Below are positions 8,900 through 64,000 of a stretch of DNA of 64,000 bases, one piece after another. The stretch spans positions 37,262,001-37,326,000 of the forward strand of contig OZ038378.1 in NCBI GenBank assembly GCA_964036045.1, in the 5' to 3' direction. The DNA comes from Eutreptiella sp. 'Long Island Sound 2002' (taxonomy: Eukaryota > Protista > Euglenida). How positions within the stretch are numbered: the first letter of the stretch is position 1; each line of letters starts with the position of its first letter. Position numbers and translations under genes: made by a program. Under the pieces are notes generated by a model, which saw only the letters and a list, made by a program, of their open reading frames with translations, searched no databases and was not told the DNA's origin.

Positions 8900-9507
8900 T
8901 TGTTTACTCACCATTTCTTTCTCCTCCGCAGCAGTTCGTTTTATGACCTCGTCACTGGTACCAACCTCCATTATTTTTACTCCACTGGCCAAAATGACCA
9001 CAAACAACATATCCCCATCTAAATGAGGAATGCCGGTAGTGGCAGCTTGTCGCGGCACTGGCCGTGTTCGTAATTGATGTTCCACGCAACGTGGTCCACG
9101 CTCACTTGAAACCCTGCCTTCAAAATCCACCGGTTGAGGTCAGTTCCGAAGGCCTCGTTCACGTGGATTTTCGGATCTGGACTAGTGGTGTCGCCTTTCC
9201 TTTTTTGGCCCCTAGCCTCTTAAAGAGGCTCACCCTCTTTTTGAGACGGGATACCGTACTGCGGAGCAGCTGTCTCCCACAGCCGGTGTCCCTGTGGCCC
9301 CATCATTCCCGTCATGTCAACGTCACCCTCGTTGTTTTTCGTCCCCGTTATCAGTGTCCTCCCCCAGCTGGAGCCCCACGTACTGCGGTACGTACTTTCC
9401 AATGTTTGTATGCGGCCCTGCAGACTGTTCGTCAAGGTCACTGTCATATTTGTAATATGTTGTGCTCCAATTACAAAGAGAAGATCATCTAAACGGAAAA
9501 TATCCAT
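8900..9507 (-). pseudogene. Degenerate coding region of unknown function, divergent from the 9.6-kb gene
   Basis: Protein-like reading across ORFs 9220..9507 and 8897..9130 with a stop/frameshift; ends at a gtgagt donor-like site. No known motif. Confidence 0.25.
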
Positions 9508-9559
9508 AATTTACGGCGCCGCCGCCGTAAAAATTTACGGCGGCGGCGGCGTAAATGAA

Positions 9560-11576: not shown

Positions 11577-12607
11577 GTGGCAGCCTAGGGATTAATGTTG
11601 TAGTACCCCTGCGTGCCTAACGAAATAGCATTGTAGGCTACCTATACAATCTATACATTACGTGTGAGGAATGGAGACTTAGATGGTGTTTGGTATTCAC
11701 GGCGCTGCCGCCGTACTTTTTAGGGCTCTGGTGCTGTAAACTGTGAATTTGCTATCAAATGAGGTAATGGACCATACTTGTTGTCCAAATTTGTCCAACT
11801 GTGTCCAACGGCCAAGGCAATGTGTGGCTTTTTTCCTCTAAGATATATTTGCATGATGACACAGAGGTTTCTTTTTTTTATTCGGTACTCAAGAGCACAT
11901 CAATGGCCGCTTCTTTTGGTTGGAGTGAGAGAACCTGATGTACTGCATGATTTTTATACTGCATTCTCCGCTTGCTTGGCAACGTTATCTGTGCTATGTC
12001 GCTATGCTTCTGCTGCTGGCTGCTGTTTGGTAATTGTGGGCCATGTCGGAACAGTGGTGTGTGTGGGATTGGGGGGGGCACCTAGGGCCTACTCAGCTTG
12101 TCCTTTGTGTACCCCCCTGGTGCACTCAAAGTATACTTTTGTACGCCCCCCCTTTACAGCCATTACTCTATTTTCGTTTACGGCGCTGGCGCCGTAAAAT
12201 TTAAGGGTGCCCCTCCCTGAAAGCAACGTTCCCGTCGGGGCTAGTATCCCCCCCAAAAAACAGCTGTATCTTTTTCACTTCTGCCCAATAGGGTCGTATT
12301 GTGTCCCATGTCTTTTCCAAGTGTGCCAAATAGTGTACACAAGCTGCCTCCAAGCCATCACTGAAATCAACCAAGAGGTAAAACAGTGTAGAATGGAGGT
12401 GACAATTGCTTCGCTAATTTGTCATTGATTGAAACAATGCAACCACACAAGGTGTCCATCCATGAATGATGTTTTTTTTTAAATATCGGCTTCGACGAAA
12501 GGTGAAAAAGCCAACATCCTGTCCAAATTTTTACGGCAACAGCGCCGTATATTTTCCGAGCGTAAGTGGTTTGATTTCGGGGGGTTATTGGCCGTCGGCT
12601 GGTTTTT

Positions 12608-17220: not shown

Positions 17221-18118
17221 GGGGGGGGGGGGGTTGTGTCTTTTTCGACGGCTCAGTTTGCTGAGCACCCCGGCTAAGCCGTCACTGAGCCGTCACTGAG
17301 CCGGCTCACTTAGCTCTCACTTAGCTCTCACTTAGCTCTCACTGCGCGCCAAATGGCTCACTGAGCGCTCATTGAGAGCTAATTAGGGGCTCACTCTGGG
17401 CTCTCTCAGATCTGACTCAGGAGTTTCTCCTCCTTTTCGCGCTCTCTTCCCACCCTTGCCGGTCCACACTTCACCCTTTTGGGTGGGTGGGTGCCATTTT
17501 CATGAGGTAACAAGGAACACCCTCCCAAATGGCTAGGTTCATATCCCCGAACCCCAACCCCGTAACCATCTCTCCCTAGCCCTTCACTTCGCATGGTTCA
17601 ATGTGGCCATGTGTTTATGTACACGCAAGATAATTGCACACAAGAATGAATGTAGGTGTCAATTTTCGCATGTGCATGTGTGTGTGGACGTGTGTATGGG
17701 TGTATGTGTGTGTATGTGTTTGGATATTTGTGTCCCTCACGAAGTGTGTGTGTTTGGATTTTTGTGTGTTTGTCGCGGTGGGCACATGTATGCAAGTATG
17801 TATGTGTGCATGCACGCTCAAATCCTTGGAGAAAAGACATGGTGACAACTGCGGACCGGTGTTGGTGTCCACACACACACACCGTGAAGCACAAATAGGG
17901 CACAGAGGACGTTGCTCGCTTTTGTGAGGTTCATCATACCACTATCTTGACCTACACCATGACACATTGCTACGTTCCCCCGCTTCCCTTGTGTGTAGCC
18001 CTTCTCTTCTCTTGCCCCCCGTCCCCTTGTCCTGCCTTTTCTATTTTTTGGCCATGGCATTACATGCATGATGGTGGCAGCAAGGACGATAACCTTTGCA
18101 GGTATGTTTTGCTATTGT
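17221..18118 (+). repeat. Left TIR of element B (resumes at 22241-22260 after the foldback insertion)
   Basis: 17221-17482 matches rc of 30140-30399; 17881-18118 matches rc of about 29420-29705; 17490-17875 matches 29750-30135 in direct orientation. Confidence 0.85.
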
Positions 18119-18388
18119 GTGTGTGTGTGTGTGTGTGAGTGCTTGCGTGCGTGTGTAGTGGTGCCCATGCGCATATGCGCAAGTGTAGATGGTTTGTTCG
18201 TTCTTGGTTTCTCCCATTTAATGTGTTTATATGTCTTCTAGTGTGTGTGTGTGGGGGGGGTTGCTTGGATCGATGCGTGGGTGAAGGTGTCTTTGTGCGT
18301 GAGTCTTTGTGAGTGTGTGACTGCATCCTTTGGTTTCTGGTTGCCTAGGTTCGTATGTGTATGTGGATTCGTGAATGTGTGTACATGC

Positions 18389-18390
<2 letters not shown>

Positions 18391-18457
<67 letters not shown>
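18391..18457. repeat. (GT)n microsatellite, ~33 units
   Basis: Uninterrupted gt run. Confidence 0.95.
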
Positions 18458-18458
<1 letters not shown>

Positions 18459-19429
18459 CACGTGTTGTTTTGGATGTTGTTGTTCGTTTTGGTGTTGTGT
18501 TGCATAGGCTTTGATTGTGTGCCCATAACATTGTGTTTGTGGCTGCAGACACACATATGGTTGTGGTTGTGGTTGTGGCTGTGCTTCTGAGCTTGCGTGA
18601 GGTTGTTGCTCTGGCCGTTGTGGTAGCTCTAGCTGTGGGTGTGGTTTTGGTAGTGGCTGTGGTTGCGGCTTTGGGTGTGGCTGTGGGTGTGGATGTGGGT
18701 GTGGGTGTGGGTGTGGGTGTGCTTTGCAAGCTGTGCTGTGCGTAGATTTGGTTGTGGGTGTGTCAGCGTGTGTGGCCCTGGCTGTGGCGAAGGCTGTAGT
18801 TGCAACTTTCACTGTGGTGGCAGCTGTTCTTTGGGTGCTGGCTGTAGTCGGGGGGGTTAAAGGTTTGCAAAGAGGGGGGCTCAAATTACCATCCACCCCC
18901 TCCCAAAAAAAATCGGACCAAGTTTACCGTGACAGTGTACATTGACAGTGTAGAATGACAGTGTAGAGTGCTAATGTAGAGTCTTGGGCGTTGTGGCGGA
19001 CGTGCTGTGTGTGGGGATACATTCTATGTGACCTTGGGGAGTACAAACTACAGTGTACAATGTACACTGTACAGTGACAATGTACAGTGACAGTGTATGG
19101 TGACAGTGTGCAGTGGCACTGTGCAGTGTGCAGTGATGGCGTACAGTGCCAGAAGGCAATGTACCATGTACAGTGACGGTAGACAGCGACATCATTGACA
19201 TTGTACATGGACAATGTACATTGACGGTGTACAGTGACAGTGTACAGTGACAGTGTACAGTGACAGTGAAACATGAGTGAGCGCTCACTGAGCCATTTGG
19301 CGCGCTCAGTGAGCGTTCACTGCGCCGTTTGGCGCGCTGAGTGAGCGCTCAGTGAGAGCGCGAAAGGGCGCAGTGAGCGCTTTGTGAGAGCGCCAAATGT
19401 CCCAGTGAGCACTCACTGAGCGCCCGAAC

Positions 19430-20925
19430 GCTTGCACTATAGGGTGTGCAGTGTGCATGACACAGTGTGCATTATGCATTACACAGTGTGTACTGTGCAG
19501 TGTACACTGCACACTGCACAGTGTGTACTGCACACTGCGCAGTGTGTACTGCACACTGCGCACTGTAGACGGTGCATTTCAAATTGCACACTGCACACTG
19601 TGTATTGCACACTGCACACTGTGTATTGCACACTACACACCGCACCCTGTGTAATGCACACTTGGTATTGCACACTGCACCCGGTGCACTGTGCAATACC
19701 CAATGTGCAATACATAGGGTGCAGCGCGTAGTGTGCATGACGCAGTGTGCAGTGTGCGTTACACAGTCTACAGTGTGGATTACATCACACACGGCACACT
19801 ACACCCTGTGTAGTGGACACCACACACGGTGTGCAGTGTGCAGTGTGCAATACACAGTGTGCAGTGTGTAGTGTGCAATACGGAGTGTGCAGAGTGTATT
19901 ACACAGTGCATTACAGTGTGCCGTGGGCAATTTGTAACACACCGTGTGCAGGGTGCTGTGTGCAACACGGAGTGTGCACAGTGTATTACACAGTGCATTA
20001 CAGTGTGCAGTGGGCAATTTGTAACACACTGTGTGCAGTGTGCAGTGTGCAATATAGTGTATGCAGTGTGCACTGTGCAATAAACAGTGTGCGGTGTGCA
20101 ATACACAGCGTGCAGTGTGCATTACAGTGTGCAGTGTGCAATTTGTAACACACGGTGTGCAGTGTGCAGAGGGCAATACAAAGCGTGCGGTGTGCATTAC
20201 AGCGTGAAGTGTGCAATTTGTAATGCACAGTGTGCAGTTTGCAGTGTGCATGACACAGTGTGCAGTGTGCATTACAGTGTGGAGTGTGCAATACACAGTG
20301 TGCAGTGTGCAATACACAGTGTGCAATACACTGCATACCACACCCTGTGTATTGCAAGCTACACACAGTGTGCAGTGTGCAGTGTGCAATACACAATGTG
20401 CAATGTGCAGTGTGCATTACACCGTGTGCAGTGTGTATTACAGTGTGCAGTGTGCATTACAGTGTGCAATGTGCAATTTGTAACACACAATGTGCAGTGT
20501 GCAGTGTGCAATACACAGTAAGCAATGTGCAGTGTGCAATGCACATTATGCAGCGTGCAGTGTGCAGTGTGCATTACTGTGTGCAGTGTGCATTACAGCT
20601 GCAGTGTGCAATTTGTAATGCACGTTGTGCAGTGTGCAGTGTGCAATACACAGTGTGCAATGTGCATTACACTGTGAAGTGTGCAATACAGAGTGTCGAG
20701 TGTGCAATACACAGTGTGCAGTGTGCAATACACAGTGTGCAGTGTGCGATACAGAGTGTGCAATGTGCAATACACAGTGTGCACTGTGCAATACAGAGTG
20801 TGCAGTGTGCAATACACCGTGCGCACTGTGCAGTACACAGTGCGCAGGGAGCAGTGTACACTGCACACTACACACCGTGTAATGCACGATGCACAATGTG
20901 GCATGCACACCGCACACCGTACAGT
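19430..20925. repeat. Low-complexity satellite of gtgtgca/gtgtgcaatacaca units
   Basis: Dozens of 7- and 14-bp related units; accounts for the spurious Cys/His/Val ORFs in the track. Confidence 0.9.
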
Positions 20926-22833
20926 GCAAGCGTTCGGGCGCTCATTGAGTGCTCATTGAGCCGTTTGCTGCCTCACAAAGCGCTCATTGCGCTGTTTCGC
21001 GCGCTCACCCAGCGCACACTCAGCGCGCCAGACGGCGAAGCGAGCGCTCACTTAGCGCGCCAAATGGCTCAAGGAGCGCTCAATGAGGGCTCACTCATGG
21101 TTTACTGTCACTGTACACTGTCACTGTACACTGTCCATGTACATTGTCAATGCTGTCACTGTCAGCTGTCACTGTAAATGGTACATTGTATTCTGGCATT
21201 GTACGCTGTCACTGCACACTGCACACCGCCACTGCACACTGTCACTATATAGTGTCACTGCACATTTTCACTGTACACTGTACACTGTACACTGTACCCT
21301 GTACTCTGTACACTGTACTCCACAACGGCCAAGACTCTACACTAGCACTCTACAATGTCACTCTACAATCACTGTATGCTCTCACTGTACACTGTGATTG
21401 TACACTGTCACTGTCCACTGTCACGGTAAACTTGGTCCGATTTTGTTTGGGAGGGGGTGGATGGTAATTTGAGCCCCCCTCTTTGCAAATCTTGAACCCC
21501 CCCCCCCCCCACAACTACAGCCAGCACCCAAAGAACAGCTGCAGCCACAGTGAAAGCTGCAACTACAGCCCTCGCCACAGCCAGGGCCACACACACTGGC
21601 ACAACCACAACTGAATCCACACACAACACAGCTTGCAGAGCACACCCACACCCACACCCACACCCACACCCACACCCACACCGACAGCCACACCCACAAC
21701 CAAAGCCCCAACCACAACACTTACCATAACCACACCCACAACGAGAGCTACCACAACGGCCATAGCAACAACCTCACGCAACCCTAGAACCACAGCCACA
21801 ACCACAAACACAACCATACCTACATCCGCAGCCACAAACACAATGTTATGCACACACAATCAAAGCCGATGCCACGCAACACCAAAACCAACAACAGCAT
21901 CCAAAACAACAGCCGCAAAAGCTGCAAAAGCTGCAATACACACACACGCACACACATTGGTACACGCACACACACACACACCTGCACGTACACACATTCA
22001 GGAATCCACACACGCACAGAAACCTAGGCAACCAAAACCCAACGAGTGCAGTCACACACGCACAGTGACGCACAAGGACACCTTCACCCACACATTGATC
22101 CAAGCAAGCCCCCCCCCCCCCCGACTCGCACACAAACATACATACAAACACACTAAATGAGAGAAACCAAGAGCGAACAAACCATGTACACTTGCGCACA
22201 TGCGCATGGGCGCAAACACACACACACAACCACACACAATCTTAGACGGCCCAAGTTGCCCACCCCGGTAAATCAGCCCAAAACACCCAAAAAGGGCCAT
22301 TTTGGCCGGTGGGAAATTTCATGGCCTGTTTTTTAGTCATTCTGAATTTGACTGTTTGACAGCCTGTTTTTTTGGTTCTCATATCCACGCACACAAAGCC
22401 AGGTGACTGCGCATGGTCAATTTTTACGCTTCAGTGAACAAGTTTTGCTTTGTGCTGTGTTATCTTTGTCCACCTATGTACCTTTCTCTTGGAATTTCGA
22501 AAAGTGTCTAGATCCAGACACTCTTTGAAATTCCACCCCTGTCACAACGAGTTTTTGAGGTTGCAGTGTCTGGTTCCAGACAAACTAAACAATTTTCAAC
22601 TTTTTAGGGGGGGGGTCACCAGGTGTCTGTCCGGAGTGTCATACGTCCTATGTACACCCCCATAACATGGAGAATGTGTCTGGTTCCGGACATTTTGCTG
22701 ACCTTCCGTGATTAAGATCCTCATTTGAGTGAACAGTGTCTGGTTTTAGACACTCTCCACCAATTGTTTGGTCACTGAGCAGGTCTGTTTCGTTGTTGTT
22801 CACTGTTTCGTTTAGTCTGGTTCTGTTCCACTG

Positions 22834-24972
22834 TTGATGAGCCAGGTGACCAGTGCTGCGACAGATCCCTTTGGTCTCCTGCGTGACTTCTTACGTGGAG
22901 CGAAGTATGGTACACCGCTGGAGCTTATGGATGCCGCTTTACGCGATGAGGAACCAGGTGCAGCCCTGCTTGTGGAGGTCTGCGCACAGATGAGGGTCAA
23001 CCGGCGAACCAGATGCAGTATGGCAACGTTGATCAAAGATCATGGGCAAACACCGTGGCCAAGGTGGTATGGAGTGTTTGCACGCAAGGTGTACGCAATG
23101 ATGCAACTGTGTCGGAAGATGGCTCTGCCACAAGAAAAGGCTGTTGGCTCAATGATAAGTGCATCCAGGGGGATGCGGAGACAATTGTCACATGCAGGTC
23201 TTGCCGCGGGCCGGTTACCGCCTTTGGGGCAACAAGCACATGCCAGAACAAACGCCATCTGGAGATCAATGGCAGGGAAGCAGGTGGTGGTGCAGTTTGA
23301 CAACTAGTATCGCAGACGGCACTGTGGTGACCCGGTTCGACCCGATTGCTGTCTGAACGTCAGTGCCATGTCAGTGTTGCATACAACTGCGATTCCTATG
23401 TACCCGGGTGTCCCTACACTTGATGATCTTCTCCAACGCATCCCGCAAACAGCACAGACCATAGTAGCCAGTTTCCGGGAGTTCGCACGAGCGGTGGACG
23501 CTTTGAGGCGAGATTCACCAGAGGCCCAATACGTACGGGTTCCACTAGATGTGCACCGGGACAGCACTCGTTCACTCCAATGGTACCCCGTGATGCTAGC
23601 CGACCTGGTCTCCAGCTCCAATGAGGACTTGCTCCACATCATGGAACAATGCCTAGCCATTCAGGTTCACACACGCCACGTCATGCCCCTTCTGATGGAT
23701 GAAAATGTATTCTACAAAGACGCCAAGTTCATCTACAGTCGCACGTACAACCCCTTTAAGTTGTCTGAGCACTATGCCACTCTCCCAATGCTGTATGGCT
23801 GCTGGCACCCTTATAAGTATGTGTGTACCATCATCCACCGTAAGTTCTTCCCCATATTGGGCTACCTTGGGCAGCAAGTGCCCGCGGTAGATGAAGAGAT
23901 CATGTGCTTCCCGAAGCTGTTGCACATTGAGAAGCAATTTTGTGCCCTACTGTTAGCCACACCCAACGTTGAGGACCGCATTGTACACACGGAGACTTCA
24001 ATTATGCAGTTTCCAGAGGCATCCCGCAAGCTACCACTCGTATGGTTGACTGGACTGAAGAACCTCTTGCACTTCTACATTCCGGCTGCGTTCCTCCTTG
24101 GAAACTTGGTTCGTGACTGCAACTGGGATGGTCGACCAGCAGGGACAGGCGATACGGCCCGCAAAGTATTGGAGTTGAGTTTGGTATTGATTGTAGCCTT
24201 GACAATGGACACTGACTGTAACGTCCCCTACGTACGCACCCTTTGTGTCGCCCTTCGGTTGTGGTTACCCCGGAATGACACCGACCCGGGCCGTTGTTAT
24301 CCCGAGGAGCCCCTGGAGGCCATGTTGAGTCGTCTCTGATCTAGCTGCCGCGCATAACCCTAGATGAAGACTTTTGACCAGACATTGGACCTGTTTTTGA
24401 GCATGGCACCACCAAAGCGCGGGGAAAAGAAGACGCGGGGGCAGATCCGCAGTGGACCGGTTGCGATCATGTCGTCACGGCTACGCAGGTTCCTGTTGGC
24501 CATTACAACGAACCGCATGGTCCATGTTGAATGGAACAGTGGAAAGAAGGTAGCATTCACCGCTGTCCCTCACGAGTTGAAATTCCCATGGCAACCACTG
24601 GACAACGGTGGTGTGGCCCTGTACCAGAGACTGTTGACTAGATCACTCTCCACATTGACAGGCGCAGCGCGTTCGCCTACCAATGAGGTCTCACGGTTGT
24701 TGAGAACCATTGTTCCAGGCAGAGACCCCCGCGAGCATGCAGGCCGAGATGCACAAGCTTAGCGGGTGCGGGACGCAGCAATTGTGGTAGCAGATGATGA
24801 CGATGAGGCCCCGGAAGCTGCAATTGTCTCGGATTCAAGTTCACACCGGTCCGTGGGGGATTTGATAGTGGACGTGGACGCACAGGATGATGAACTACCA
24901 CCTGTTGTCCTACTGCAAGAAATGGAGGAGTATGAGGTTGTGAGTCTGGAGGATGACTCAATGGACTGCTGA
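22834..24972 (+). pseudogene. DDE-type transposase of element B (DN..D..GxWH..E, acidic tail), five in-frame stops, no frameshift
   Basis: ORFs 22834..23307, 23368..24339, 24364..24762 and 24766..24972 are all in one frame. Motifs VVVQFDN, PLLMDENVFYK, LYGCWHPYKY, YPEEPLEAML. Confidence 0.7.
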
Positions 24973-25724
24973 CACCCCGCCGAAGTGGCCTGGGCACGTC
25001 AAAGGTGTGTGTCTGGAACCAGACGCAGGTCTGGAGTCGGTTACCACAGCAGCATCGGGGTACTCCCGCAGGGCCCACTAATGTCAACCAACGCAGTGCT
25101 GGACTGATGAGATGCGCGCGTACGTGCACTGTTGCATTGCTGTACATCCCTATTTCACCGGAAAACCACAGCATGTGACCCTGACCAACTGAATACCCGG
25201 CTTAGGAAGCCACCATGCATGTGTGTCTGGAACCAGACACGAACTGTTTGTACCCCCTCTAGTGCCCAAAGAAGTACCGTAGCCGTCTGGTACCAGACAA
25301 TTAATGATTTTTCACCCATGTCATCTGCTAAAGTCAAGGTGTTGTGTCTGCAACCAGACAGACTGTGTGTTGTGCCCTCCATTGCCTGCAACATCATCTG
25401 CTCTGTTCTGGGAAATGCTAGAATCACATTGGGTAGCAAGCTACCTCGGAATTGGACTGCAAATGTGTCTAGAAACAGCCACTGACTGTTTATGGCCTGT
25501 CAATTGCCAGAACAGTACATAGTTGTGTGGAACGAGACATTAAATTGTTTCACTCCGGTTGCACACTTCAAAAGCAGACTGTTGTGTCTGGAACCAGACA
25601 AACTGTGTGTTTTACACCCCTGTGTATTGCACATGATGTGGTCTGAGTGTGAAAACGGTATGCTCACGTCGGGACCCCTGGAAAGTTAGAATCACATTGC
25701 TAAAAGGCCCGCCTTTGTGTCATT

Positions 25725-28719
25725 TTGCGTCTTGCGCCCCGTTGGTTCCAACGGTCTGATCTTTCACAAGGTAGCATTGATCCCTCTGCAAACCCCTCAA
25801 TTGATCTGGCATCCCAATTCAGTGCCCTGGACGATGCCCCCTCCAAGCACAAGCGGAAACGTGGTGACACAGCAAAGGGGAAAGATGCTCAAGTGAAACT
25901 TGGTGACCATACTAAAGACCTGGAGGTCCCACTGCCCCTCAGCAGACTGCAATGGGACAAACAAAGGGAGCATGGCCAAATCAGAGTGTTGGATGAAGAT
26001 CTTGTCCTGGACAAGTGGACAGAACTACGCAGGAATCCACCAGGTGCAGCCAAAATCCGAATCATAGTGTGGCGTGCCGCAGTGGAGCAGTACTGGATCT
26101 TATCGGGGCAGCATATCGCCGAGGCCTGTCGACGAATCTCACGGGAGTACATGAATGCTCATCTGCAACCGCCAACATGGTCAGTGCAATTTCTTGCTCA
26201 AGTGGTTCGTACGAATGTCTCTCTACACATATGGGAGTCAATCGCTAGCACGTCACAGGTATATCGAATGTGACAGTGCACTGCGACACTGCATGCCCAC
26301 ACCAGTGAAATATCCTGCGCCTGTGACGTGCATCTCGACGTGCCAGTTCTCCTTGGTGACCGGCCGCTTCGTTGGGGGGGGGGATAACTGCTGTGACCAT
26401 CCGTCACATCACAGGCTTTGCAGTCTGCCACGACCCTGCCGAAGCTGTCCACACGGATGCAACTTCTGCGTGTTGAGCTGGACCGCGATTAACGGGAGGA
26501 GAAATCCATACGAGAACACCTGGGAGTGCTGTACGTGAAGGGTGGCTATACACTGAAGGAGGGGACACTGGTATGCCTGGTGTTGCACAGGGTGGCAGTA
26601 CAGGAACTATGTGCACATGCGTCCCTGGCCAGGACAGTTGTCGCATGCAACAACGAAGGCTGTCACAGTTGTCTGGAACCAGACACTTGATGTATTTTTA
26701 TCCGTATCAAAGCCTCTGCCAGGACCTCCATGTCTGGAACCAGACAACATTTCAGTGATGCGGCCTGTCAAGCAGAATTCCTCCTGATAGTGTCTGGAAG
26801 CAGACACAATTTTTTGTATCCCTCTCAAAGCCTGTACCTCGACCACGATGTGTGGAACCAAACAACATTTCACTGATGCGGCTTGTCAAAGCAGAATTCC
26901 TCCCGTTGTGTCTGCTAACACCCCTGTCTGCTCTGCTGGACACTGTCAGAAAAGCCTGGTTTCCGATTGCCGCGTGGGTGCAAGTGATGGGGGATAAGGC
27001 TGTGGCTGCCGTCGATGGATTGGAGAAGCGTGGACTGCCAGTAAAGTTGCACGTTTGGAAGTGCATCGAGGCCCCCATCCCACCAGACCTCGAGGAGGTT
27101 ACGCAGTACATGGGCTCCAGCAATGTGTCACTGCCAATGATTACGAAAAGGGCAAAGCAACTGAACGCTGCACGTCTGTGGGAACATCATCTCTGCCACC
27201 CGGACAACGACCTGGATGACCCCAGTCGCAAAACGCTTGCAGAACGGGCCCGCTGTGAACACAGTCTCTTGTCGAAGACCCATGTCACCTTCAAGGCGTA
27301 CAATTGCAAGTGGTTTGAGAAGAACTGCTAGCCCCCATGGAAGTATGTTGTCACTGCTGCAATGTGGAGTGACCCCACGTATGCTCCCCTCGGTGATGCC
27401 TTGAAACGTCCCCTGGTGAACCCTGAGGTCAAGATCGCTGCTGATGTCAACTTCATCACCGTGAACATCGGGTCTGAGGCCCCAGAGGCGGGGGTGACCG
27501 ACAGCAAGTCCCTGGATGGGGTCATGCATATTACTGGGATGGCATCTGGTACGCCGCTGCACTCTACGGTGGCCAACATGCCGTATTGCCTCATCATTGT
27601 TGAAGTTCCAAAGGGACATATCGAAGGCATTCGTTCCGTTGTCAGCCGCAATTTGGTATCTGGGACGCTTGTTCTCATTGTCGGCTCCGCTTGTGACGTC
27701 CTGGGAGTGCTGGATGGTCTCCGAAAGTTGCAAGACAACGAGGGGTTGACAACAATTTGCGTGGCCTGCTTTATTCTGGGATCTCTCACACAGCAGTAGT
27801 CGATGGGATTCACTGAGCTATGGATTGTTTCCAAAGATCCGCTACCCAAGAAGGTATTGCTGTCTGCTGTTGCTACCTGCTGCCTGCTACCATAGTCACG
27901 TTGGGTGCACCGTTGAATCCTAAAGTTTGTCTGGAACCAGACACGTATGAGGCACAATGCGTCCTCAAAAAGGTAAATTGTGGGAAACTGTCTGGAACGA
28001 GACAACATCAGCCAGTCCAACTGCAGCGGTAGGGGTCTCAGACTCACTGTTCCCTTATACAGGTGCCTCGCTACTTTGCGTTTTCTCGTGGTCCAATGGT
28101 GAACCAGCTGTGTACGGAGGTTGTTGGGTTTATCATGCACCACTCGGCGGATGCAGTACCCTGAGAAGCAAGTACCCTGTGGTTCCTGGTGATCAGTAGT
28201 TCTGTACAGCTGGCCTGCAGTCTGGCAGTGCGCATGCCAGTACCCATCAGTGTGGTTCTGGGTTTGCCCACGGAGCAGGAGTCTATTGCAGACGTTGGTG
28301 CCCTCGTATGCAGCAATTTACGCATTGCTGATGGGCTGAGCCCTATTCCCTGGAATGCAGTGTTTGAAAATTTCGCGGACGGGTGCCCTGTGGACTGCAG
28401 CTGTGTGCCTGAGAAGGCAGAGGGAGAGCAGGAGTCTGAGGAGGAAGTGGAAGAGGTGGGCGCCACCCTAGAGAACGCTGTGTATGGTACACCAAAGCAA
28501 TCACGGGGCCCTGGCAAAAAAGGTGGTCGCACACGCAAAGGAGACGAGAACAGAGCCTCCGGATCACAGTCAAAAGGCAAAGGCAACAAAAAAGCCCGGG
28601 CATCACCTCCTGACGAGTGTGCAGCTGCGGGAACCGATTCTCAGCCGTCTGCTTCCAAGAAGGCCAAGATTGGGTTTCAGGCATGGAAGGAACGGTTCAA
28701 TGGCTCCAAAAAGAATTAA
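25725..28719 (+). pseudogene. Accessory gene B: spliced; N-terminal ParB/Srx-like domain, putative degenerate beta-class DNA methyltransferase-like region, acidic/Lys-rich tail
   Basis: GQIRVLDEDLV..IRIIVW..YWILSGQH resembles the ParB-fold GxH(R) box. MWSDPTY and VANMPY resemble motif IV (DPPY/NPPY). The GT-AG intron 27854-28062 joins KDPLPKK|VPRYFAF in frame; further donors at 26259 and 26571, where exon phases are not fully resolved. Confidence 0.5.
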
Positions 28720-29400
28720 ACTTGCTCTGTTGTAGTTGCTGTTGGTTGCACACTGTTGTTGTAAGCTTGCTCAGTGACCACGATATCTATTCATAAGATA
28801 TAAACGTTGTGGCACCCTGTTGGCGTGCCAGTCTGCGCTCTGGGTCCCAGTGGCCTGTTTTGGCCTTTTTCCCTTCCCGATCACGAGACTGACAGTCCCT
28901 TGTCACTTTTTTATGTCATTCGGGTGCGGACCACAGTTCTTTTTGTGGAATACAACAATTTTTCACCAAGTTACGCGTTCTGTGTCTGGAACCAGGCAAC
29001 TGTTTGCGATTATTGTCCCTGTGCAGCAGGTTTTGGTGAGCTCTGTTTGTTTCCAGACAAACTTCAGTATTTCACTGTCTGCAGAACAAATTTGGATGAA
29101 AATGGTATGTGTCGACGAGTAGTGCCTCCGCTGGTGTAGTGAGATTGAACCGTGCAGATACACACATGCATTCCGTGGGGTTCCTCCTCACAATTTGACT
29201 GTTTTTCCCATAGTTCACAGGGCCCATCCTCAAGTTTGTGTTGTGCGCAAATTGCCAAAAACGTATATGGGGGTAGTCAAAAACGAGCGGAAGAAGACGT
29301 GCGCTACTTGTTGCTAAAAATTCACCACTGTAGGACGCGTTTTTGATGACCATCATCTGCGACATTTTTTTCGGGGGCGCGTTGGGGGGGGGGGGGGGGG

Positions 29401-30399
29401 GGCAACTTGGGCCGTCTAAGACAATAGCACAACATACCTGCAAAGGTCATCGTCATTCCCGCCACCATCATGCACTTGATGCCATCGCCAAAACGTAGGA
29501 AAGGCATGGCTAGGGCAGGGCAAGGGGATGCGACAAGCAAGATAAGAGAAGGGGTTCGCATGGGGTAAGCGGGGGGACGCAGCATGGCAAAAGGGGAGGG
29601 GAGGGGATAAGGACGGAGGGGAATGAGTGTGTCATGGTGTAAGTCAAGATGGTTGTATGATGAACGTCACAAAAGCGAGCAATATCCTCTGTGCCCTATT
29701 TGTGCTGCATGGCGTGCGCGCCCGTGTGTGTGTGTGTGTGGGGGGGGTGCCATTGTCATGAGGCAACAAGGAACACCCTCGCAAATGGCTAGGTTCATAT
29801 CCCCGAACCCCAACCCCGTAACCATCTCTCCCTAGCCCTTCACTTCGCGTGGTTCAATGTGGCCATGTGTTGATAACCATGCAAGATAATTGCACACAAG
29901 AATGAATGTGGTTGTCAATTTGTGCATGTGCATGTGTTGGTGGACGTGTGTATGGGTGTATGTGTGTGTATGTGTTTGGATATTTGTGTCCCTCACGAAG
30001 TGTGTGTGTTTGGATGTTTGTGTGTTTGTCCAATCCCACTCCAAAACCCCAACTGCATGTATGCAAGTATGTATGTGTGCATGCACGCTCAAGTTCTTGG
30101 AGAAAAGACATGGTGACAACTGCGGACCGGTGTTGGTGTGAAAAGGGTGAAGTGTGGGGCGGCAAGGGTGGGAAGAGAGGGCGGAAAGGGGGAGAAACTC
30201 CTGAGTGAGCCCCGAGTGAGCCCTGAGTGAGCCCCTAATTAGCTCTCAGTGAGCGCTCAGTGAGCCATTTGGCGCGCTCAGTGAGAGCCAAGTGAGAGCT
30301 AAGTGAGAGCTAAGTGAGCCGCCTCAGTGACCCCTTACTGACGCCTCGGTCGGGCGCTCACTCAACTGAGCGGTCGCCAAAAAAAGTACCCCCCCCCCC
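29401..30399 (-). repeat. Right TIR of element B
   Basis: ggcaacttgggccgtctaag (29401-29420) is the rc of cttagacggcccaagttgcc (22241-22260); other matches as listed for the left TIR. Confidence 0.85.
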
Positions 30400-36026: not shown

Positions 36027-36637
36027 CTTGTTCCGGCAACGCTGCGGCGGTGTTTTGGCCATTTGTTGGAACTCCCATTGGAAACTTTGGTTCCAACAAT
36101 TTCCCTCTTTTTTTTTTCTAGGCAATCCAGCTCGTTGTGGACACCAAATAGGTGGTCTACGACGCCCGTGATATCCCGGCCGATGTTTGGTTGGGTGGCA
36201 ATGTTCTCCAACAACATCGTTGACAGCGTGAAAAGGTTCCTATAGCAGGCGTTTAACGAGCACATTGCCCGGGGCGGTGGCAAGCAAAAGGCAACCGGGC
36301 AACCTGCTTGTGGTCGCCCGCAAGCCTCTATCGACTCAGATGCTTTCAGGCAAGTGCTGCAGTGGGTTTTTCTATATTTTCGCATCCACGTGCACCAACA
36401 TCATGTTGTTCGCCATGTTCCTTGTATTCCCAGGGCTTCCCTGAGTCCGTACCCCATTCTCCGCCCCCCTTCCTTAGCTCACTTTTGTTCTTTGCTCCGC
36501 AACATGGCCGCGCCCGTCAATGGCGATATGCTGTTGATGTCGGCCGCCCTGTGGAGGGCAACACGAAACATGCAGGTGGTGGTGTGTGCATGCATGCTTG
36601 TCAATTTGTGCATCGTGTATCGTGCGCAGCCTGTCAT

Positions 36638-37035
36638 GTGTGCATCATGGCATGCCATGGCCGCGAGTGGCCTTTGCTAGGGGCTAAGGGGTAGGGGCTA
36701 GGGGCTAAGCAAGTGACGTGTGCATCATTGCATGCCATGGCCCCGAGTGGCCTTTGTTAGGGGGTAAGGGGTAGGGGCTAGGGGCTAAGCAAGTGACATG
36801 TGCATCTTTGCATGCCATCGCCACAAGTGGCCTTCGCTATTGGCTAAGGGGTAGGGGCTCGGGGCTGTGGAAGTCGCGTGTGTATCATGGCATGCCATGG
36901 GCGCAAGTGGCCTTTGCTAGGGGCTAAGGGGTAAGTGCCAGGGGTGAAGTACGTCACGTGTGCATCATGGCATGCCATGGCTGTGAGTGGCCTTTGCTAG
37001 GGGCAAAGGGGTAGGGGCCAGGGGCTAAGGAAGGA
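36638..37035. repeat. Tandem minisatellite, 5 x 80 bp, with a G-quadruplex-type motif and a 14-bp palindrome
   Basis: tg(c/t)atc starts at 36641, 36721, 36801, 36881 and 36961. The unit contains catggcatgccatg and ggggctaaggggtaggggctagggg. Confidence 0.95.
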
Positions 37036-40000
37036 GGGGTGGTGGGTGACGGGGTGGTGGGCGGCGACGGCAAAGGAGGGGTGAGTTCTGGGGCGCCCCG
37101 TGCCATGCCAACGACGCAGGAGCAGTAGCCGAGGGACGTACAAAGAGACTAACATCATGTGCCCTTGCCGGCACCCTAACCTACAATGTATTTTTCATTT
37201 ACCCTTTATCGACACTTTGCTTTTTGTGTCGCTTGCCTGTCCGGTTGGTGTTCCGGTAACTTGTTCCGGCGGTGTTCTCGGGGTATTCTGGCAAAAACTG
37301 TTGTTGTCATGTTGTGTTCGCAAAATCAGCCTCATTTGTTTTATTTTGAATGGCGGAGATGTTTGACACACGTTGGGGGTTGATTTGAAGTTTTGTTAAT
37401 GGCAAATATCAAAATTAAAACTGATTGGCTTGTGTAGTATGATCCTTTCATTTCCGTCATGATCTTGTGATTTGTATTGGGAGATATGCGTCTCGTCAAA
37501 GACATTTTGTGTTTGAATGGATGATTGTTTCCCATGCTTGTTATTCCTTTGTGGCGTTTGCTTTTCTTCTTCTGCTCAATTGCCGTCGCGAGCATGTACT
37601 TCTTGTTTTTCTTTGGTTTTTCTTCTATTTACTTGTATCTTTTTGTATAAGCGTTGTGGAGACTGACAGGAGACATCCCCAGCTATGCAGGGAGGAGAGC
37701 CACCCTTTGGAGTGACTTTGCTACTGCAAGTAACATGACTGTGGTTGCATGTAGAGGCCGGAACTCTTTGAGTTAGGCAAACATATCGTCAAATTGGAGT
37801 TCCTAGAACAGGATAGCTGAGGGTGCCTATTGTAATAGTAGGTGATGCAGCAAAACTCCTAGAGCCATGGCTATTGTAAGTCCAACTCTAGAGCTTGTTT
37901 CGTTTTGTTGCCGGAGTATCGTGTGTCGGTTGGTTTGGATTTTGTTGGCGTGTTGGCTGTTTGTTTTTGGTTTGTTTTTGTTTTTTGGGAGTGGTTTTTT
38001 GTTTTAGAGGACCTTTTGAGTTGCCCACCTTACAGGTTCAGTGACTGGTGGGTGAGTTGTATTCTAAGGACAGTGTCAAGTGGTGCAAGTTAGTTTAGTT
38101 CCAAAAGCAGCAAGGTAATCGAATACCAAAAAGGTCCGTCCCCATTATCGATTCCATTAGAGGCTTTGTCCTCAAATCGATTCATAGTGTAGGGGTCAGA
38201 CACAGAACGTTACTAGGCAAACATGAAACCCAAAATAAGTAACCCTATGAGAGTACTTTAGTACTCAAAGAGGGTTATTAACAAGGGATTCCACTTAGCA
38301 TGATGCCTAAGCAGCTTTTTTGCAACTAGTATTGTGTAAATAGAAGTGGAACTAGGCTTGACAGGACCATATTATTACAAAACAAGCAGGTTTTACACCC
38401 CGCTACCTCGCTAGGAAGATACACGCAACTGATGCACCAATGGCAAGGCAGGAAACTACTTCGCCGCCACGACCAAACTTCCCTAGCCGCAGATGGCGAG
38501 GTATATCTTTTGTGTTGCATTTTATGTCACCGCTCCTATGTACATTCTACGGTGTGTGACCTAGATGTCACGATTCGCACCCATGATTCACATGATTTGT
38601 TTTATACCCTCAGTACGGCCCACCCTTAGGAAACCGGCGTTGTCCATAGGTGTGCACATGATGAATGCTCGACGATCCTCCCTGCAACACCCGCAAGCAT
38701 ACATGACACCACGACAAAGTGAGTGAGTACTTCGCAACGAGAATATGCAAGTCTGTGGTATCTACACTGGAGGCACGTGCCCTGCTTGGTGTAACTCTTC
38801 TCCATCACATGACACACTCACCCATATGTACACACACCTGCATCATAGTAGTAATCCGACACATTAATACCACAAAAAATGCATGAATGGGTGCTGGCCC
38901 CATTTCTCTCTATCCACACTAGGCAGACGACATGCGGACATGCAGCTCCAGCCGGAAGATACGCCATGTCATAGCCACGGGCACAATTTGCTTGCCACAA
39001 ATGACGAAGTACGGCTTTGCGTGCTACATGCACCACTACCACATACACAAACAAGACACCACACACCGCCTCCTATCAGGTGGCCAACTTCAGCCGCAAG
39101 GGACCAAGCCCTACCCAATGGTCATGAGCTACTTCAGACCCTCCACCGAATAAATCTCTCTAAGGAGCAGGTACGGACAACAAGCAAGCACGTGAGCATA
39201 CAAAATGGAGACGGGGAAGCACCCCATGCAGCCCCCCCCCCCCCCGCGCCCCACTGCCCCAATTACTCACTCGCCAGAGGACAACGCCACATATGACGCC
39301 CAAAAACAGTGGAACATCCGAATTAAGCCACACAATTTCAACACACAAAGTTTGGAACCATTCATTCATGCCGACCTGCATGAAAGCTGTGATGTCTACT
39401 TTTACCAGGACCTTGCACGTGTCCCCTCGTTGACTTGTAGATGGGGATGGAACAAAAAATAAACAAAGCCCAAAAGCATCTGCTCGGTGCTCCCTACTGG
39501 CGAAGAGGGAGAAGGGCAAGCATCACAACCGAGGCCAACGTGGACCATGCCAACATGTCCGCCCGCAAAAGGCTACGCAGAAGAGGTTGCACGCAACCAC
39601 GCTACAAATCAACCTCCGTGGGTTAGTGGGACAATTGCTGGTGCGAAGGATGTACATGAGTAATGGCTTGTGGTTGAATGTGTGTGGTTCGTTGGCATAG
39701 GAGTCAGTGCCGACGTTTCTTCAACGAGTCTTGGAGGATGTGGCCCACCTGATTGGTGGCTTGGCAATCCAACGAAATGCCGCCAATATTCGAGGCACAC
39801 AACGCTGGATGGGCTCGGAACGACTGCTAGGCTACAATAAGCTGAGAATATGTGATCATCTTGCAACCTCGGCAACTCGTAATGCAACACAATGGGGTCA
39901 ACTATCGACTTGGTTTATGCTATCAAGGGAGTGCAACTGTTGTAATGTGTGCAATTTATGCTAAAATCACTTTTACCCATCTAAATGAGACCCCTCCACC

Positions 40001-59802: not shown

Positions 59803-60993
59803 ATGGTGAATTGGCAGGAGGTGGGCAAGATGTGGCCGTTGCCCCACCCCCATGCGGTGCGCCTACTGCGTGGGTTGGTGTGGGGGCAGCACTACCGCCA
59901 CAGCAACCCCCAGTGCGAAGGCGGCATGCCCGGGAGCTTTGAGCTGCGCGAGGATATGGGCGCCGACCGCCTGCAGGCAGTGGAAGACTGGCTGCGGGTG
60001 GAAGGATATGCCTACCGCTTCCGCCAGAAGCGCTGGAGGGTCTGGACCCGCCTGGACAGACCCGGCAAAGGGCTGCGCCCTGACGGGATTGAGGCGGACG
60101 AGAACCCCAACGAGTACCCGTCGGGCGCCACGATCAACGTCTCTATGTGGGACATGATCGAGGAGAAGTTCCCGGAACAGGGGAACGAGCGCACGCTGCA
60201 GGGCAGCAACAGCAGCGCGTCCCCGGGGAAGGAGAAGCAGTCCGCCGGGGACAAGAAGCGGGACAAGAAATGGCGGGAGTACCAGGAATCCCTGGCCCCC
60301 GAAGCCGCCCAAGCCGCCAAGGGCGGAACCCCAGCCCCCAGCCCCCAACGGGCCAGTGGCGGTCACCACCCCGGCCACACCACCCTTGGCGACTTCCTCG
60401 AAGTCGCCAAGAAGGCTAAGGCCAAGCCCCGTCCGCTGCACCTGAGGAAGTCAGGCCTCAGCAGCGACGTGGAGTCGGCCCACCGTTGGAGGATGCCGGA
60501 CGACCAGGCCAGCTCCAGCAGCAGCGTCGCTCCGGACCAAAGGGACGTGGCCCGCGCCTGCGAGCGCGCCTGTGGGGTGCCCTGCAACCTTCGGGTTGCC
60601 CGGCAACGGGCCACGCAGCAGAACGCTGCCGTGTAGGGCGCCGTCGGCATCGCCCAGGAGGAGGCCACAGATTGGGGCAGAGGCATGGCCTTCCACGCCT
60701 CGACCGTGGCGGCCATTGCGGCCGGACTCACGGCTGCAGCCGCCCAGGAGGCAGCGACTGCCCGGGTCAGGAGTGAGGTGGCGGCAACCGCCCAGGAAGC
60801 CCGCCTGGCCCAGGAGGCCATTGTCCGTAAGGAGGCCGAGGTGAAAGTGCTGGAAGAGGCGCTTGCCCAAGGGAGGCCAAAGAAGGAGGCGGAGGAAAGG
60901 GTCCACGCCGAAGCAACGGCCAAGGCCCAAGCGGACGCCGCCAGGAACTTAGCCCACGCAAACTGCACCCCCTTTTGGAAGAGAAGGACCTAA
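59803..60993 (+). pseudogene. GC-rich ~396-codon ORF with one internal TAG and a C-terminal coiled coil; possible retroelement ORF1
   Basis: ORFs 59803..60636 and 60685..60993 are in the same frame with only the TAG at 60634-60636 between them. No diagnostic motif. Confidence 0.35.
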
Positions 60994-61148
60994 AAAATGA
61001 CCGCCCAAATAACTATTTTTTTTGGACATTTGCAACACACATGGCCCAGATGCCACCGAAAAAATACAATTTTACCCAATTTGCTGCTTTTTTCCACTTT
61101 TTGCTTATCAAAATAAACTATTATTTTGTCTGATTTGAGGGGTGTGTT

Positions 61149-64000
61149 TTACCAATCTTGTCGTTTTTGTATTTCAAAAGCCAACTGGTGCGTGCCTGTT
61201 CGGGAGCTCATTTTCAAAATATGACATTCTGCGGGTCTCCAGTTGCACCTATGTTTGTCCTGCGAAATAAATTGCTTTTTTGTGTACCTGAGTGCGCGAG
61301 GCCTCGCGCACTCAAGGTCATGGAAACAATTGTGTACAGAGGGCAACAAAAACAGGACACGAAGTGCACAACGTACAAACACTGAGATAAAAGCTTGGCA
61401 AAAATGTACAACCCTTTAAGGGCATATAATTGCATTCGCGTCGAAGGCGAGCGCGCGAGCCCTCGCGCACTCATGACTGCAAAAAGAGGCGTAACACTTG
61501 GGTTAATGGTGACTTACTTCTTCTTAGGTCCAGCAACCTTAGCCAACCTGGAACCCAGGCTTCTTGCTGTTGTACTTGTCCCACTTGGAGAGGCAACGGT
61601 ACCTCGAGACGGCAGGGTACCAGAACGCGAGGGCGGCTTGAACTCTGCAGTAGCACTGGCAGCAGTCTTCGCTTTCTTCTTGGACTGTTCCTTACCAGAG
61701 TCGGGGCTGCTTGCATCGAAGTGAGAGGCGGATGCCCGCTTGCGCTTCTGCTGGGTCTCCAGTACTTGCTCCAGATCGTCTTCTTCTGACTCCTCGTCAG
61801 TATCGTCGTCGTCTGATTCCGCGGGCTTGTCCGATTCCTTCTCTTTCCCTTTTGCTTGCTTCTTGGTACTCGAGGGTGTTCCTTTTCCGGCTGCAGTACC
61901 CTGAGTTGGTACAACTTTGGCAGTCTTCTTCATCTTGGCTTGCATTGGCAAGGTAGGTGCAGGCGCACCAGGCTCAGTGTCTTCAGCGGGGGCCTCAGTC
62001 ACGACATCTTGCTGGACGGCTTCTGCAGCATGCACCTGCTGGTGCCCTTCATGCCCTCGTTTGCTGTCCAAAACCCACAGTGGAATGCCACGCTGGAGCC
62101 ACTCTTCTTGAGTATCCCAAGTTGCAGCTGTTGCTCCCTGCTCCGTCTGATCGGCCTCCAGCATGTACCGCATCACGATTGCATGCTGCAGAGCACCTCC
62201 AACGGCATTCCCTAGGTCCTTTTGCTTGATCGTTGACACAGCCAGAAACGCCACTTTAGTTTTGAGGTCAGACATCGCAATCTTTGCGGCCATGGCAGGC
62301 GTGTCGTCCACAACAACCACTGCATCAGGAAGCCCACTGCACAAAACGTATCTGTCCAGGTACCACAGCACGTGAATCAGAGGCATGAAACCGCCGAGGT
62401 TCTTCTCTTGCATCTCTTCGAAATGTCCAGCGGAATACGACACATAGTTCGGCAACTGTAAATGTGATGAATATAGACGAATAACGGAGGCAGCAGTGCG
62501 CGAGGCCTCGCGCACACAACGGCATCGTAACAATCGAAAGAAGCAGATATACCTGCTTATCCCAGCGACTCGTTGTTCCGATCCACATACAGTGCTCGTC
62601 GAACTGATACGTACTGCTGGTCACGGGACCCGATAACCAAGAGTACACCGGCAACCGAACATGGTAGAATGGCACTGTGGTTGGATCCTTGTCCTTCTCC
62701 ATACGCCAGAGCCTCTGCATTTCGCGGCCAATACGGTGCACAACATCAGCCTCGCCATAGAAAATGACGTCTTTCCCCAGCATCATCACATCGAACAGCC
62801 ACTTCGGAACAAATCCTGGAGAGTCGTATTCAATGAAAAGGTCAGCGTTGATGATCCACAACGGGTACTGCAGATCCCGGAAACGGCCTGGCGGTGTCTC
62901 TTCAATATTCTCAATACGGCAGGCTGTCAAAGCGTATTTGATCCCTTGCTCGTCCGACTTGGAGACATTGATCACATCGCCATTACTGAGCTGTGTCTGT
63001 GAAGGTGCCGATGATGGTGCCTCAACCTTCCTTTGCAGTTGTTTCCGCACGGCCAACGTCTGTGGTAATGGAGGTGCGCCCTTGTCCCCAGTGCGCCACA
63101 GAGGTGCAGTGAGCAACGTCTTCCATTTTGGCCAGGGCGACCGAAACTTCGTACTTTTTGCGTCCACCCAATAACCCCAATTTCCAAGCCCAATTTTCAA
63201 TTGCGGCGTGCCCAGTGCTGCGACTTCTGCTCGGATCTTCGCATCGGCAGCTGTACGGATGTGACAAACGTGGTGAAGTGCGCGAGCCCTCGCGCACTGC
63301 AGCTGCGACACTGACGCATACCTGCGGTCTGGTTGACATGCTGCGTATTGTCCGGATGGTCAAGATGGAAAATAACCCATTGTTCCGTAATCTGCGCGTC
63401 AATGTAGTTCTGGGTGGTCTTCAAGGTCGAGTCCTTCAGGTTCATGTGCGCACAGACTTTCTGCAATAGGCTCGGTAGATGCAGCCCCTCCAGCCTCTTG
63501 AAGGCATTCCTTGTAACGTCCTCTTTCTTGCTCTTACTCTCGAGGTTCCTCATACCAGTAACCGCCTCACGGCCGCAGTAATACGCCAGGGAGAAGATGT
63601 CCCTCCAATTCTTGAATGTCGAGTCCTGCGGGGGGAGACAGTGTCATGGAGTGCGCGAGGCCTCGCGCACTGTAACCGTGCGATACACGAATACATACTG
63701 TATGTCCTGCTTCCTCCAAAGCCTCGGGTGCAAGAAACGCAGAGTTGACGGCAGCTTGGACAACAGCAATCTTGAACCTCTCGAAATCTTGTGGCTCTTT
63801 TTCCCGCTTCTGATCCTCAATGTACAACAACATGTTGTCCAGCGCCTCGGACAGCGGAATCCACGTCACAGACTGGCTGCCAGCTTGTTGCAATCCTGCA
63901 ACCTTGGCACGGATCCTCCAAGGCGTTTCGTACTTCAGAATGTCAACGTAGCAAAACTCCTGCCAATCCTCCAATTCTTTGCCTTCTTCGAGACGCTGTT
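61149..64000 (-). CDS. Accessory gene C (5' end outside window), six exons, no internal stops after splicing; homologue of gene B
   Basis: Exons >64000-63699, 63625-63322, 63250-62553, 62455-61518, 61413-61377, 61259-61149; all five GT-AG junctions keep frame. PKWKTLLTAPLW resembles PPWKYVVTAAMW of gene B; ILKYETPWRIRAKVAGLQQ resembles VVRTNVSLHIWESIASTSQ; both have an acidic/Lys-rich tail. Confidence 0.75.
61260..61376 (-). other. GT-AG intron (117 nt, phase 0) containing the perfect 26-bp palindrome C at 61289-61314
   Basis: gtacgt...ttcgcag; frame-preserving, but the flanking frame is also open without splicing. Confidence 0.55.
61414..61517 (-). other. GT-AG intron (104 nt, phase 2) containing palindrome C at 61449-61472
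   Basis: gtaagt...ttaaag; the apparent ORF stop (TAA) lies inside the donor. An alternative acceptor at tttgcag is possible. Confidence 0.6.
62456..62552 (-). other. GT-AG intron (97 nt, phase 0) containing palindrome C at 62496-62515
   Basis: gtatat...ttacag; joins RWDKQ|LPNYVSY. Confidence 0.85.
63251..63321 (-). other. GT-AG intron (71 nt, phase 1) containing palindrome C at 63277-63298
   Basis: gtatgc...gtacag; joins NQTA|AADAKIRA. Confidence 0.85.
63626..63698 (-). other. GT-AG intron (73 nt, phase 0) containing palindrome C at 63650-63671
   Basis: gtatgt...ccgcag; joins EAGHT|DSTFKNW. Confidence 0.85.

Follow-up and report, generated by a model that had tools for sequence, protein, structure and literature searches.

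A palindrome repeated in the introns and flanking non-coding DNA of a presumed transposon gene of Eutreptiella, a putative self-recognition site

A short palindrome is repeated in the non-coding parts of gene C, a gene at one end of a stretch of genomic DNA from the euglenid Eutreptiella sp. 'Long Island Sound 2002'. The window, i.e., the whole stretch that was analysed, has a length of 64 kb and covers positions 37,262,001 to 37,326,000 of contig OZ038378.1 (assembly GCA_964036045.1). Gene C belongs to a repeated, presumably mobile unit, called element C here. The palindrome lies in three short introns of the gene and twice past its stop codon, and the same 18-bp core was found at matching non-coding places in all seven paralogous loci, at protein identities of 25-85%. 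With modest confidence, the palindrome is probably a selected cis-acting site of one transposon family, recognised as DNA by a dimeric protein that the element itself encodes.

Palindrome copies and the expression of gene C

The window was searched with a 20-mer query at up to three mismatches, and the expectation was derived from shuffled sequence. Five copies of the core GTGCGCGAG[G/C]CCTCGCGCAC were found, starting at 61292, 61451, 62496, 63278 and 63651, against a shuffled mean of 0.01. No further copy exists in the 64 kb at this threshold, as the original prediction, made from the letters of the window, had stated. The consensus in the window element is 22 bp with its flanks included. The core common to the whole family is TGCGCGAGGCCTCGCGCA (18 bp), which is longer, at 20-22 bp, in the gene C subfamily. 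At position 61452, within one of the two copies past the stop codon, all four sequence runs have a T, which restores the consensus.

Gene C lies on the minus strand and runs past the window end at 64000, beyond which its N-terminal part is encoded. Four open exon segments are joined in frame after the removal of three GT-AG introns, and the stop codon is TAA (61514-61516). Sequence runs were compared over 60501-64000: one RNA run from a culture (X8), two estuary metatranscriptomes (X9 and X13) and one estuary DNA run (X5). Contigs, rather than reads, were aligned to the window, a procedure by which rare spliced isoforms could escape detection. Exactly the three expected joints are present in all three RNA runs, and the X5 DNA contigs continue unbroken through introns 1 and 3. 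Gene C is therefore expressed, and its three introns are real. In the coding sequence, the RNA contigs and the window show zero differences.

According to the original prediction, all five copies were placed in GT-AG introns whose removal keeps the frame. This was confirmed for three of them (introns of 73, 71 and 97 nt), and the RNA junction check that had been proposed for the introns came out in their favour. The copies at 61451 and 61292, in contrast, are found past the stop codon, in RNA that is not spliced. The X8 contig is continuous over 60948-62455 and the X13 contig over 61399-62455, without splicing across either copy. Below about 61430, the metatranscriptome depth drops from 76-95 to 0-5, and the contig of X13 terminates at 61399, where adapter sequence adjoins. 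The main end of the mRNA is placed near 61399-61430, with a minor end at 61133. Therefore, the copy at 61451 lies in the 3' untranslated region (3'UTR), and the copy at 61292 is downstream of the main end. Likewise, the claim that every intron carries the palindrome holds for the three introns in the window, but not for a further upstream intron (intron 0) of the paralogues L067 and L068, which has no copy. Its counterpart in gene C would lie beyond position 64000. The coordinates are given in Table 1.

Table 1 Features of gene C and its palindrome copies in the window (minus strand; copies numbered in the direction of the gene)
Feature	Position	Strand	Location	Remarks
Exon of gene C	63699..64000	-		cut by window end; open frame; RNA contigs without differences
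Intron 1	63626..63698	-		73 nt, GTATGT...GCAG; joint 63624/63698 in RNA contigs X8, X9, X13; crossed by DNA contig X5 record 13
Palindrome copy 1	63651..63670 (22 bp with A/T flanks: 63650-63671)		intron 1	exact match; 1.5 nt off intron centre
Exon of gene C	63322..63625	-		best conserved part against distant paralogues, 44% identity
Intron 2	63251..63321	-		71 nt, GTATGC...ACAG; joint 63250/63322 in RNA contigs X8, X9, X13
Palindrome copy 2	63278..63297		intron 2	one mismatch, central GC for GG; 1.5 nt off intron centre
Exon of gene C	62553..63250	-		232 amino acids in frame
Intron 3	62456..62552	-		97 nt, GTATAT...ACAG; joint 62455/62553 in RNA contigs X8, X9, X13; crossed by DNA contig X5 record 9
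Palindrome copy 3	62496..62515		intron 3	exact match; 1.5 nt off intron centre
Last exon of gene C	61514..62455	-		stop codon included; acidic, lysine-rich tail ...PKKK; same C-terminal end in L069, L072
Palindrome copy 4	61451..61470		3'UTR, 44 nt past stop codon, non-intronic	two mismatches; RNA contigs unspliced
Palindrome copy 5	61289..61314		terminal non-coding part of element, beyond main mRNA 3' end	perfect 26-bp palindrome
Non-coding 3' terminal part of repeated unit	60948..61513	-		unit end at 60948

Several further observations concern the copies and the transcripts. A weak second motif, approximately ATTGTTTCGATG, stands 8-20 nt from the palindrome on its gene-sense 5' side in a subset of the copies. 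It was seen at 62516-62534 and 61312-61330 in the window, at 5600-5625 in L069 and at 4436-4461 in L072. The intron 3 copy and the copy at 61292 have about 15 of 20 flank bases in common, and a site may thus have been copied along with its flank. Over 2.2 kb of coding sequence, the RNA contig of X8 matches the window without a difference, and 30 differences were counted in the 580 bp after 61526 (60948-61526). This suggests that X8 expresses a copy other than that of the window, or a recombinant copy, whose tail differs.

Conservation of the palindrome in paralogous loci

Relatives of the 232-amino-acid exon are present among 1.8 billion representative proteins. The 68 that were found are nearly all exon-sized fragments with 51-88% identity. 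No full-length spliced gene C protein is contained in the protein libraries, and the relatives are genomic exon fragments reading into introns. The contigs of seven relatives (L067-L073) were fetched; six of them belong to a single long-contig assembly, and L070 comes from another metagenome.

The places of the core are shared among these loci. A 5' pair, 55-58 bp apart, lies between the stop codon of the upstream gene and the ATG, and a 3' pair lies past the stop codon. Copies are further found in introns 1 and 3, in intron 2 (restricted to the gene C subfamily) and in intron 0 (restricted to the L069/L072/L073 subfamily). L072 has three extra copies in the region of the upstream gene. Altogether, the element in the window carries five copies, and the fuller paralogous copies carry about seven to ten.

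Conservation is confined to the core. In 34 good copies, the information content amounts to 1.4-2.0 bits per position in the core, against 0-0.6 bits in the flanks. When the window is compared with paralogues of 25-50% protein identity, 16-18 of the 18 core bases are identical in introns 1 and 3, and the 25-nt intron flanks on either side are similar at the level of shuffled sequence only. These values bear out the earlier remark that the rest of each intron is dissimilar, and they argue that the core alone has been under purifying selection or has been continually homogenised. The subfamilies differ in the outer pairs, with AG...CT in the window and mostly T...A in L069 and L072. In L070, the most distant relative, one variant is common to introns 2 and 3. 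Its central 12 bp are unchanged, three outer arm pairs are swapped symmetrically, and an identical C.C mismatch occurs in both copies. Since the mismatch is the same in both, the sequence itself appears to be held, beyond mere pairing. Gene copies that have decayed also have decayed palindromes.

The occupied introns are not the same in all subfamilies. Introns without a palindrome are intron 0 in L067 and L068, intron 2 in L069 and L072, and intron 1 in L068. Introns with and without the site have a similar length (69-74 nt). Introns 1 to 3 stand at positions common to paralogues of about 27-45% protein identity, so that the presence/absence comparison once suggested for homologues speaks against a recent gain. 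Exact centring of the palindrome was considered as a rule and rejected: the offset is 1.5 nt three times in the window copy, but 5.5 and 8.5 nt in L072. Possible eroded remnants were seen in palindrome-less introns at 4795-4868 in L072 and 5073-5141 in L067, e.g., GGTGCGCTGCACC in intron 2 of L072. If these remnants are genuine, every intron of the ancestor may have carried a site.

The mobile unit and its protein

Because the homology between the window, L067 and L068 breaks off sharply at 60948/60946, and the contigs of other copies, RNA as well as DNA, part from the window at 60945-60948, position 60948 is taken as the end of a repeated, presumably mobile, unit. In L067 and L072, an open reading frame (ORF) upstream of the gene is like the first gene of element B, a resemblance noted by eye. 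Element B is located at 17221-30399 in the window and has long terminal inverted repeats. This resemblance points to gene C as the second, accessory gene of a two-gene element, the other end of which would lie outside the window. The upstream protein has no recognised domain in Pfam, NCBIfam or PHROGs, a transposase domain included. Several of the fetched copies are decayed, with stop codons, frameshifts and lost splice sites.

The sequence CTTAGCCYACG, found at 4200 and 8240 in L067, was considered as a terminal inverted repeat and dropped, as the homology start at 4200 is inside the upstream ORF and L068 is merely truncated there. In L071, the 3' end of the gene is partly duplicated in inverted orientation upstream of the main copy (912-1515), and the duplicate has a palindrome pair 159 bp apart. 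L073 has two gene copies in tandem, at a distance of about 4.9 kb. The GC-rich DNA that adjoins the element end on its outer side (60501-60968) reaches a summed depth of up to 622 in the estuary DNA run, where the gene has about 20, and probably represents another high-copy repeat.

The N-terminal part of the protein was traced through the paralogue L072. Its exons 1 and 2, joined across the 73-nt GT-AG intron 0, align with the uninterrupted N-terminal ORF of the accessory gene of element B (E 6e-13, 27% identity over 126 residues), and the junction is ungapped. Intron 0 is absent from element B's gene, and it bears a copy of the palindrome in the L072 subfamily. The N-termini alone align; a tblastn search of exons B to D of gene C against element B's gene gave no similarity. 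Among the protein-language-model neighbours of element B's N-terminal domain, clusters of ParB_N and DUF6551 are nearest (0.92-0.93). This is the one positive sign of a ParB relationship, and the accessory products of gene C and element B are regarded as likely to be ParB-like. No recognisable domain was detected in the middle and C-terminal parts of gene C (Pfam, NCBIfam and PHROGs on all exons), and the protein-language-model search with the 232-amino-acid exon gave no informative neighbours.

Palindromes of other families in the window

Element B has a palindrome of its own. About 19 sites of the 16-bp TGTCTGGAACCAGACA were found (26 strand matches vs 0.11 expected). They are confined to 22505-29059, where they form clusters at a spacing of about 60 bp, all between ORFs. 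A third palindrome, TTTACGGCGCCGGCGCCGTAAA, has four copies (0 expected) in 4465-12198, at 4465-4486, 9510-9555 and 12177-12198; two of them are adjacent, at 9510 and 9534. In the window search, the gene C palindrome was absent from element B, and the element B palindrome was absent from element C. The palindromic sites are private to each transposon family. Outside these elements, the gene C palindrome was found neither in the other 61 kb of the window nor in the seven fetched loci. A scan of metagenome contigs for the 20-mer gave 66 loci, all of them single matches in bacterial contigs of 60-75% GC, and these were set aside as chance matches.

Other repeats of the window are of a different kind. 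A large nested inverted repeat, with arms of up to 259 nt and 88% complementarity, is located inside the left part of element B (18300-22150). It is built of TGTGCAGTG-like and CACTGTACA-like repeats with periods of 7, 13 and 21 nt. A tandem repeat of about six 80-bp units, which are 81-88% alike, was seen at 36633-37113.

Possible function of the palindrome

The sites most likely act as DNA. One copy lies past the main transcript and the 5' pair stands between genes, and for this reason DNA is favoured over RNA as the form in which the site is read. A sequence-specific reader would account for the homologous introns without the palindrome, the variable centring, the use of one sequence at seven places and the palindrome of its own in each family. 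The simplest form of such a reader would be a dimer on a symmetric DNA site. Copies would be kept by selection where 18-22 fixed bases spare the proteins, i.e., in short introns, the 3'UTR, the intergenic gap and the terminal non-coding DNA. The likeliest reader would be a symmetric dimer of an element-encoded protein on double-stranded DNA, and the best candidate is the gene C product, whose N-terminal part shares homology with element B's putatively ParB-like gene. By binding at many places along the element, the protein would be able to find its own copies. These copies could then be marked, shielded from silencing, regulated, or folded together for transposition. The location in introns would reflect available space, and the RNA hairpin would be a by-product. 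DNA sites for the element's own protein had been among the options of the original prediction. This option fits best, as sites are also found outside introns, the core is kept letter for letter, and it is family-specific; the binding itself is predicted from the sequences.

Several points weigh against recognition as DNA by the gene C product. The ParB fold found no support in Pfam, NCBIfam and PHROGs searches with the gene C exons, the paralogue ORFs and the element B ORFs, or in PDB sequence and profile searches with element B's N-terminus, all without matches. The AlphaFold models are poor, with a predicted local distance difference test score (pLDDT) of 40 for element B's N-terminus (shallow alignment) and 50 for the 232-amino-acid exon (20 aligned sequences). 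A Foldseek search of the exon model against the PDB gave nothing significant (best E-value 0.2, weak Rossmann-like noise). In the alignment of L072 and element B, read by eye, the place of the ParB GERR box holds SGQH or NGQH. With GQH at this place, a clamp-like cytidine triphosphate (CTP) chemistry is doubtful. Moreover, four of the five window copies are transcribed, and all five in the minor isoform. An RNA hairpin would account equally well for the kept symmetry of the palindrome. Even without strong selection, the sites might stay identical through gene conversion between copies, and the transposase, instead of the gene C product, could be the reader.

As an alternative, the palindrome may act as an RNA hairpin in the pre-mRNA and the 3'UTR, where it would aid or regulate splicing, affect mRNA stability or export, or be cut into small RNAs. 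Every copy folds into a GC-rich stem of 9-11 bp, three copies are within 1.5 nt of the centre of a short intron, and the symmetric arm changes in L069 and L070 keep the pairing. Furthermore, most of the copies are transcribed. Nevertheless, this explanation is unlikely. The palindrome-less homologous introns listed above do not fit it, centring is not general, and one copy is past the main mRNA end. When whole introns were folded and compared with shuffled sequences, intron 1 alone stood out (z -2.8, against -1.1 and -0.2 for introns 2 and 3). An Rfam search of the whole window gave no match. A hairpin also leaves unexplained the use of one sequence at seven places, which pairing would not need, as well as the identical C.C mismatch of L070 and the family-specific palindromes. 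A hairpin that aids or regulates splicing, another option of the original prediction, is consequently unlikely, and a hairpin as a second layer on top of a DNA site is possible.

The sites could also be read by the transposase of the element, i.e., the product of the upstream gene, and play the part that subterminal repeats have in CACTA, Mutator or hAT elements. This would agree with the site pair towards the 3' terminus of the unit, at 345 and 505 bp from 60948, with the pair that precedes the gene in the paralogues, and with the three further copies in the upstream gene region of L072. However, the sites are not limited to the ends of the element but run through its middle. In the upstream protein no domain is recognised, so that it is itself a putative transposase, and the published parallels assign the reading to the accessory protein. 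A transposase as reader is about as improbable as an RNA hairpin.

A stronger form of the self-recognition idea is that the short introns serve mainly as housings for the recognition site. Every ancestral intron would then have had a palindrome, introns of about 70 nt would have been gained or retained to provide a site every few hundred bases in a coding region of 2.7 kb, and the copies would have spread by directed copying. This is considered quite unlikely. If true, intron gain or retention would have been driven by the need of a transposon for internal binding sites.

Finally, an introner-like origin, in which these introns were made or entered by a tiny mobile DNA with the palindrome as its core, was the remaining option of the original prediction and is very unlikely. 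A perfect palindrome of 18-22 bp is presumably beyond point mutation and would have spread by duplication or conversion; the flank bases shared by the intron 3 copy and the 61292 copy, and the absence of the copy-bearing intron 0 from element B's gene, could be read in the same way. Nonetheless, similarity is limited to the 18-22 bp, the remainder of each intron is unrelated and without common ends, the positions of introns 1 to 3 are old, intron length is equal with or without the site, and copies outside the elements are lacking in the window and the fetched loci, the metagenome matches being chance singles in GC-rich bacterial DNA.

Comparison with known systems and significance

Introners are known from Micromonas, Aureococcus, dinoflagellates and fungi. 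They are whole, near-identical introns in many unrelated genes, often with terminal repeats and target-site duplications. Gene C resembles them in having a repeated sequence within short spliceosomal introns of a protist. In contrast, only the central 18-22 bp are common here, and they are found within one transposon family alone.

A further likeness is seen in the bacterial ParB-parS system. There, copies of a palindrome of about 16-18 bp lie within and near the gene of the protein that is presumed to bind it as a dimer, a clustering that is also found here. The differences lie in the GQH in place of the GERR CTP-binding box (read by eye), in the ParA partner, of which none was seen, and in the ParB fold, which is putative here. 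Moreover, the context of the gene C palindrome is a nuclear eukaryotic transposon with spliceosomal introns.

ParB-like proteins have also been described in giant algal transposons. In the red alga Bostrychia, the PAG3 gene of Plavaka elements has a ParB-like N-terminus and adjoining tandem arrays of inverted repeats, and its protein was proposed to bind and modify the element that carries it (bioRxiv 10.1101/2025.02.11.637652). In Ectocarpus, the Sola1 family has a ParB plus DNA methyltransferase gene, and the same suggestion of self-binding was made (PMC12477816). The shared arrangement is an accessory gene with a ParB-like N-terminus beside a transposase gene, with inverted repeats alongside; for gene C, the ParB-like N-terminus is likely and the neighbouring transposase gene putative. 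A C-terminal 2-oxoglutarate (2OG) oxygenase or methyltransferase is recognisable in those families, whereas no such domain is detectable in gene C. The two papers, in the parts that were searched, make no mention of intronic sites or of conservation across subfamilies. The host of element C also belongs to another protist lineage.

Another parallel is VANC21 of Arabidopsis. This anti-silencing protein, an accessory protein encoded by the transposon, binds a short motif that has accumulated in non-coding parts of its own VANDAL21 copies, namely in introns, between genes and in the terminal DNA, and related families have different motifs (Hosaka et al. 2017, PMC5735166). As in these Mutator-like elements, the motif of element C is restricted to non-coding parts of its own element, among them introns, and is family-specific. 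VANC is, however, unrelated in sequence to gene C, and its motif YAGTATTAY is non-palindromic and spreads as tandem repeats. Here, single perfect palindromes are found, one per short intron, and the core is conserved over a much deeper protein divergence. Binding and loss of methylation are proven for VANC, whereas the reader of element C is predicted.

The principle has thus already been published for VANC/VANDAL, Plavaka and Sola1. The addition made here consists of one RNA-verified site per short intron, the deep conservation of the core, the turnover of occupied introns and another lineage. In practice, the palindromes can be used in annotation to mark these elements and their intron positions. 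If the site is read by the element's own protein, one 18-bp site at a dozen or so positions and an expressed gene would form a compact and testable self-recognition system. An idea that was put forward for transposons of red and brown algae, and of which another form is proven for VANDAL/VANC, would then extend to another protist lineage, and such sites could persist unchanged in introns while the protein diverges to about 25-30% identity.

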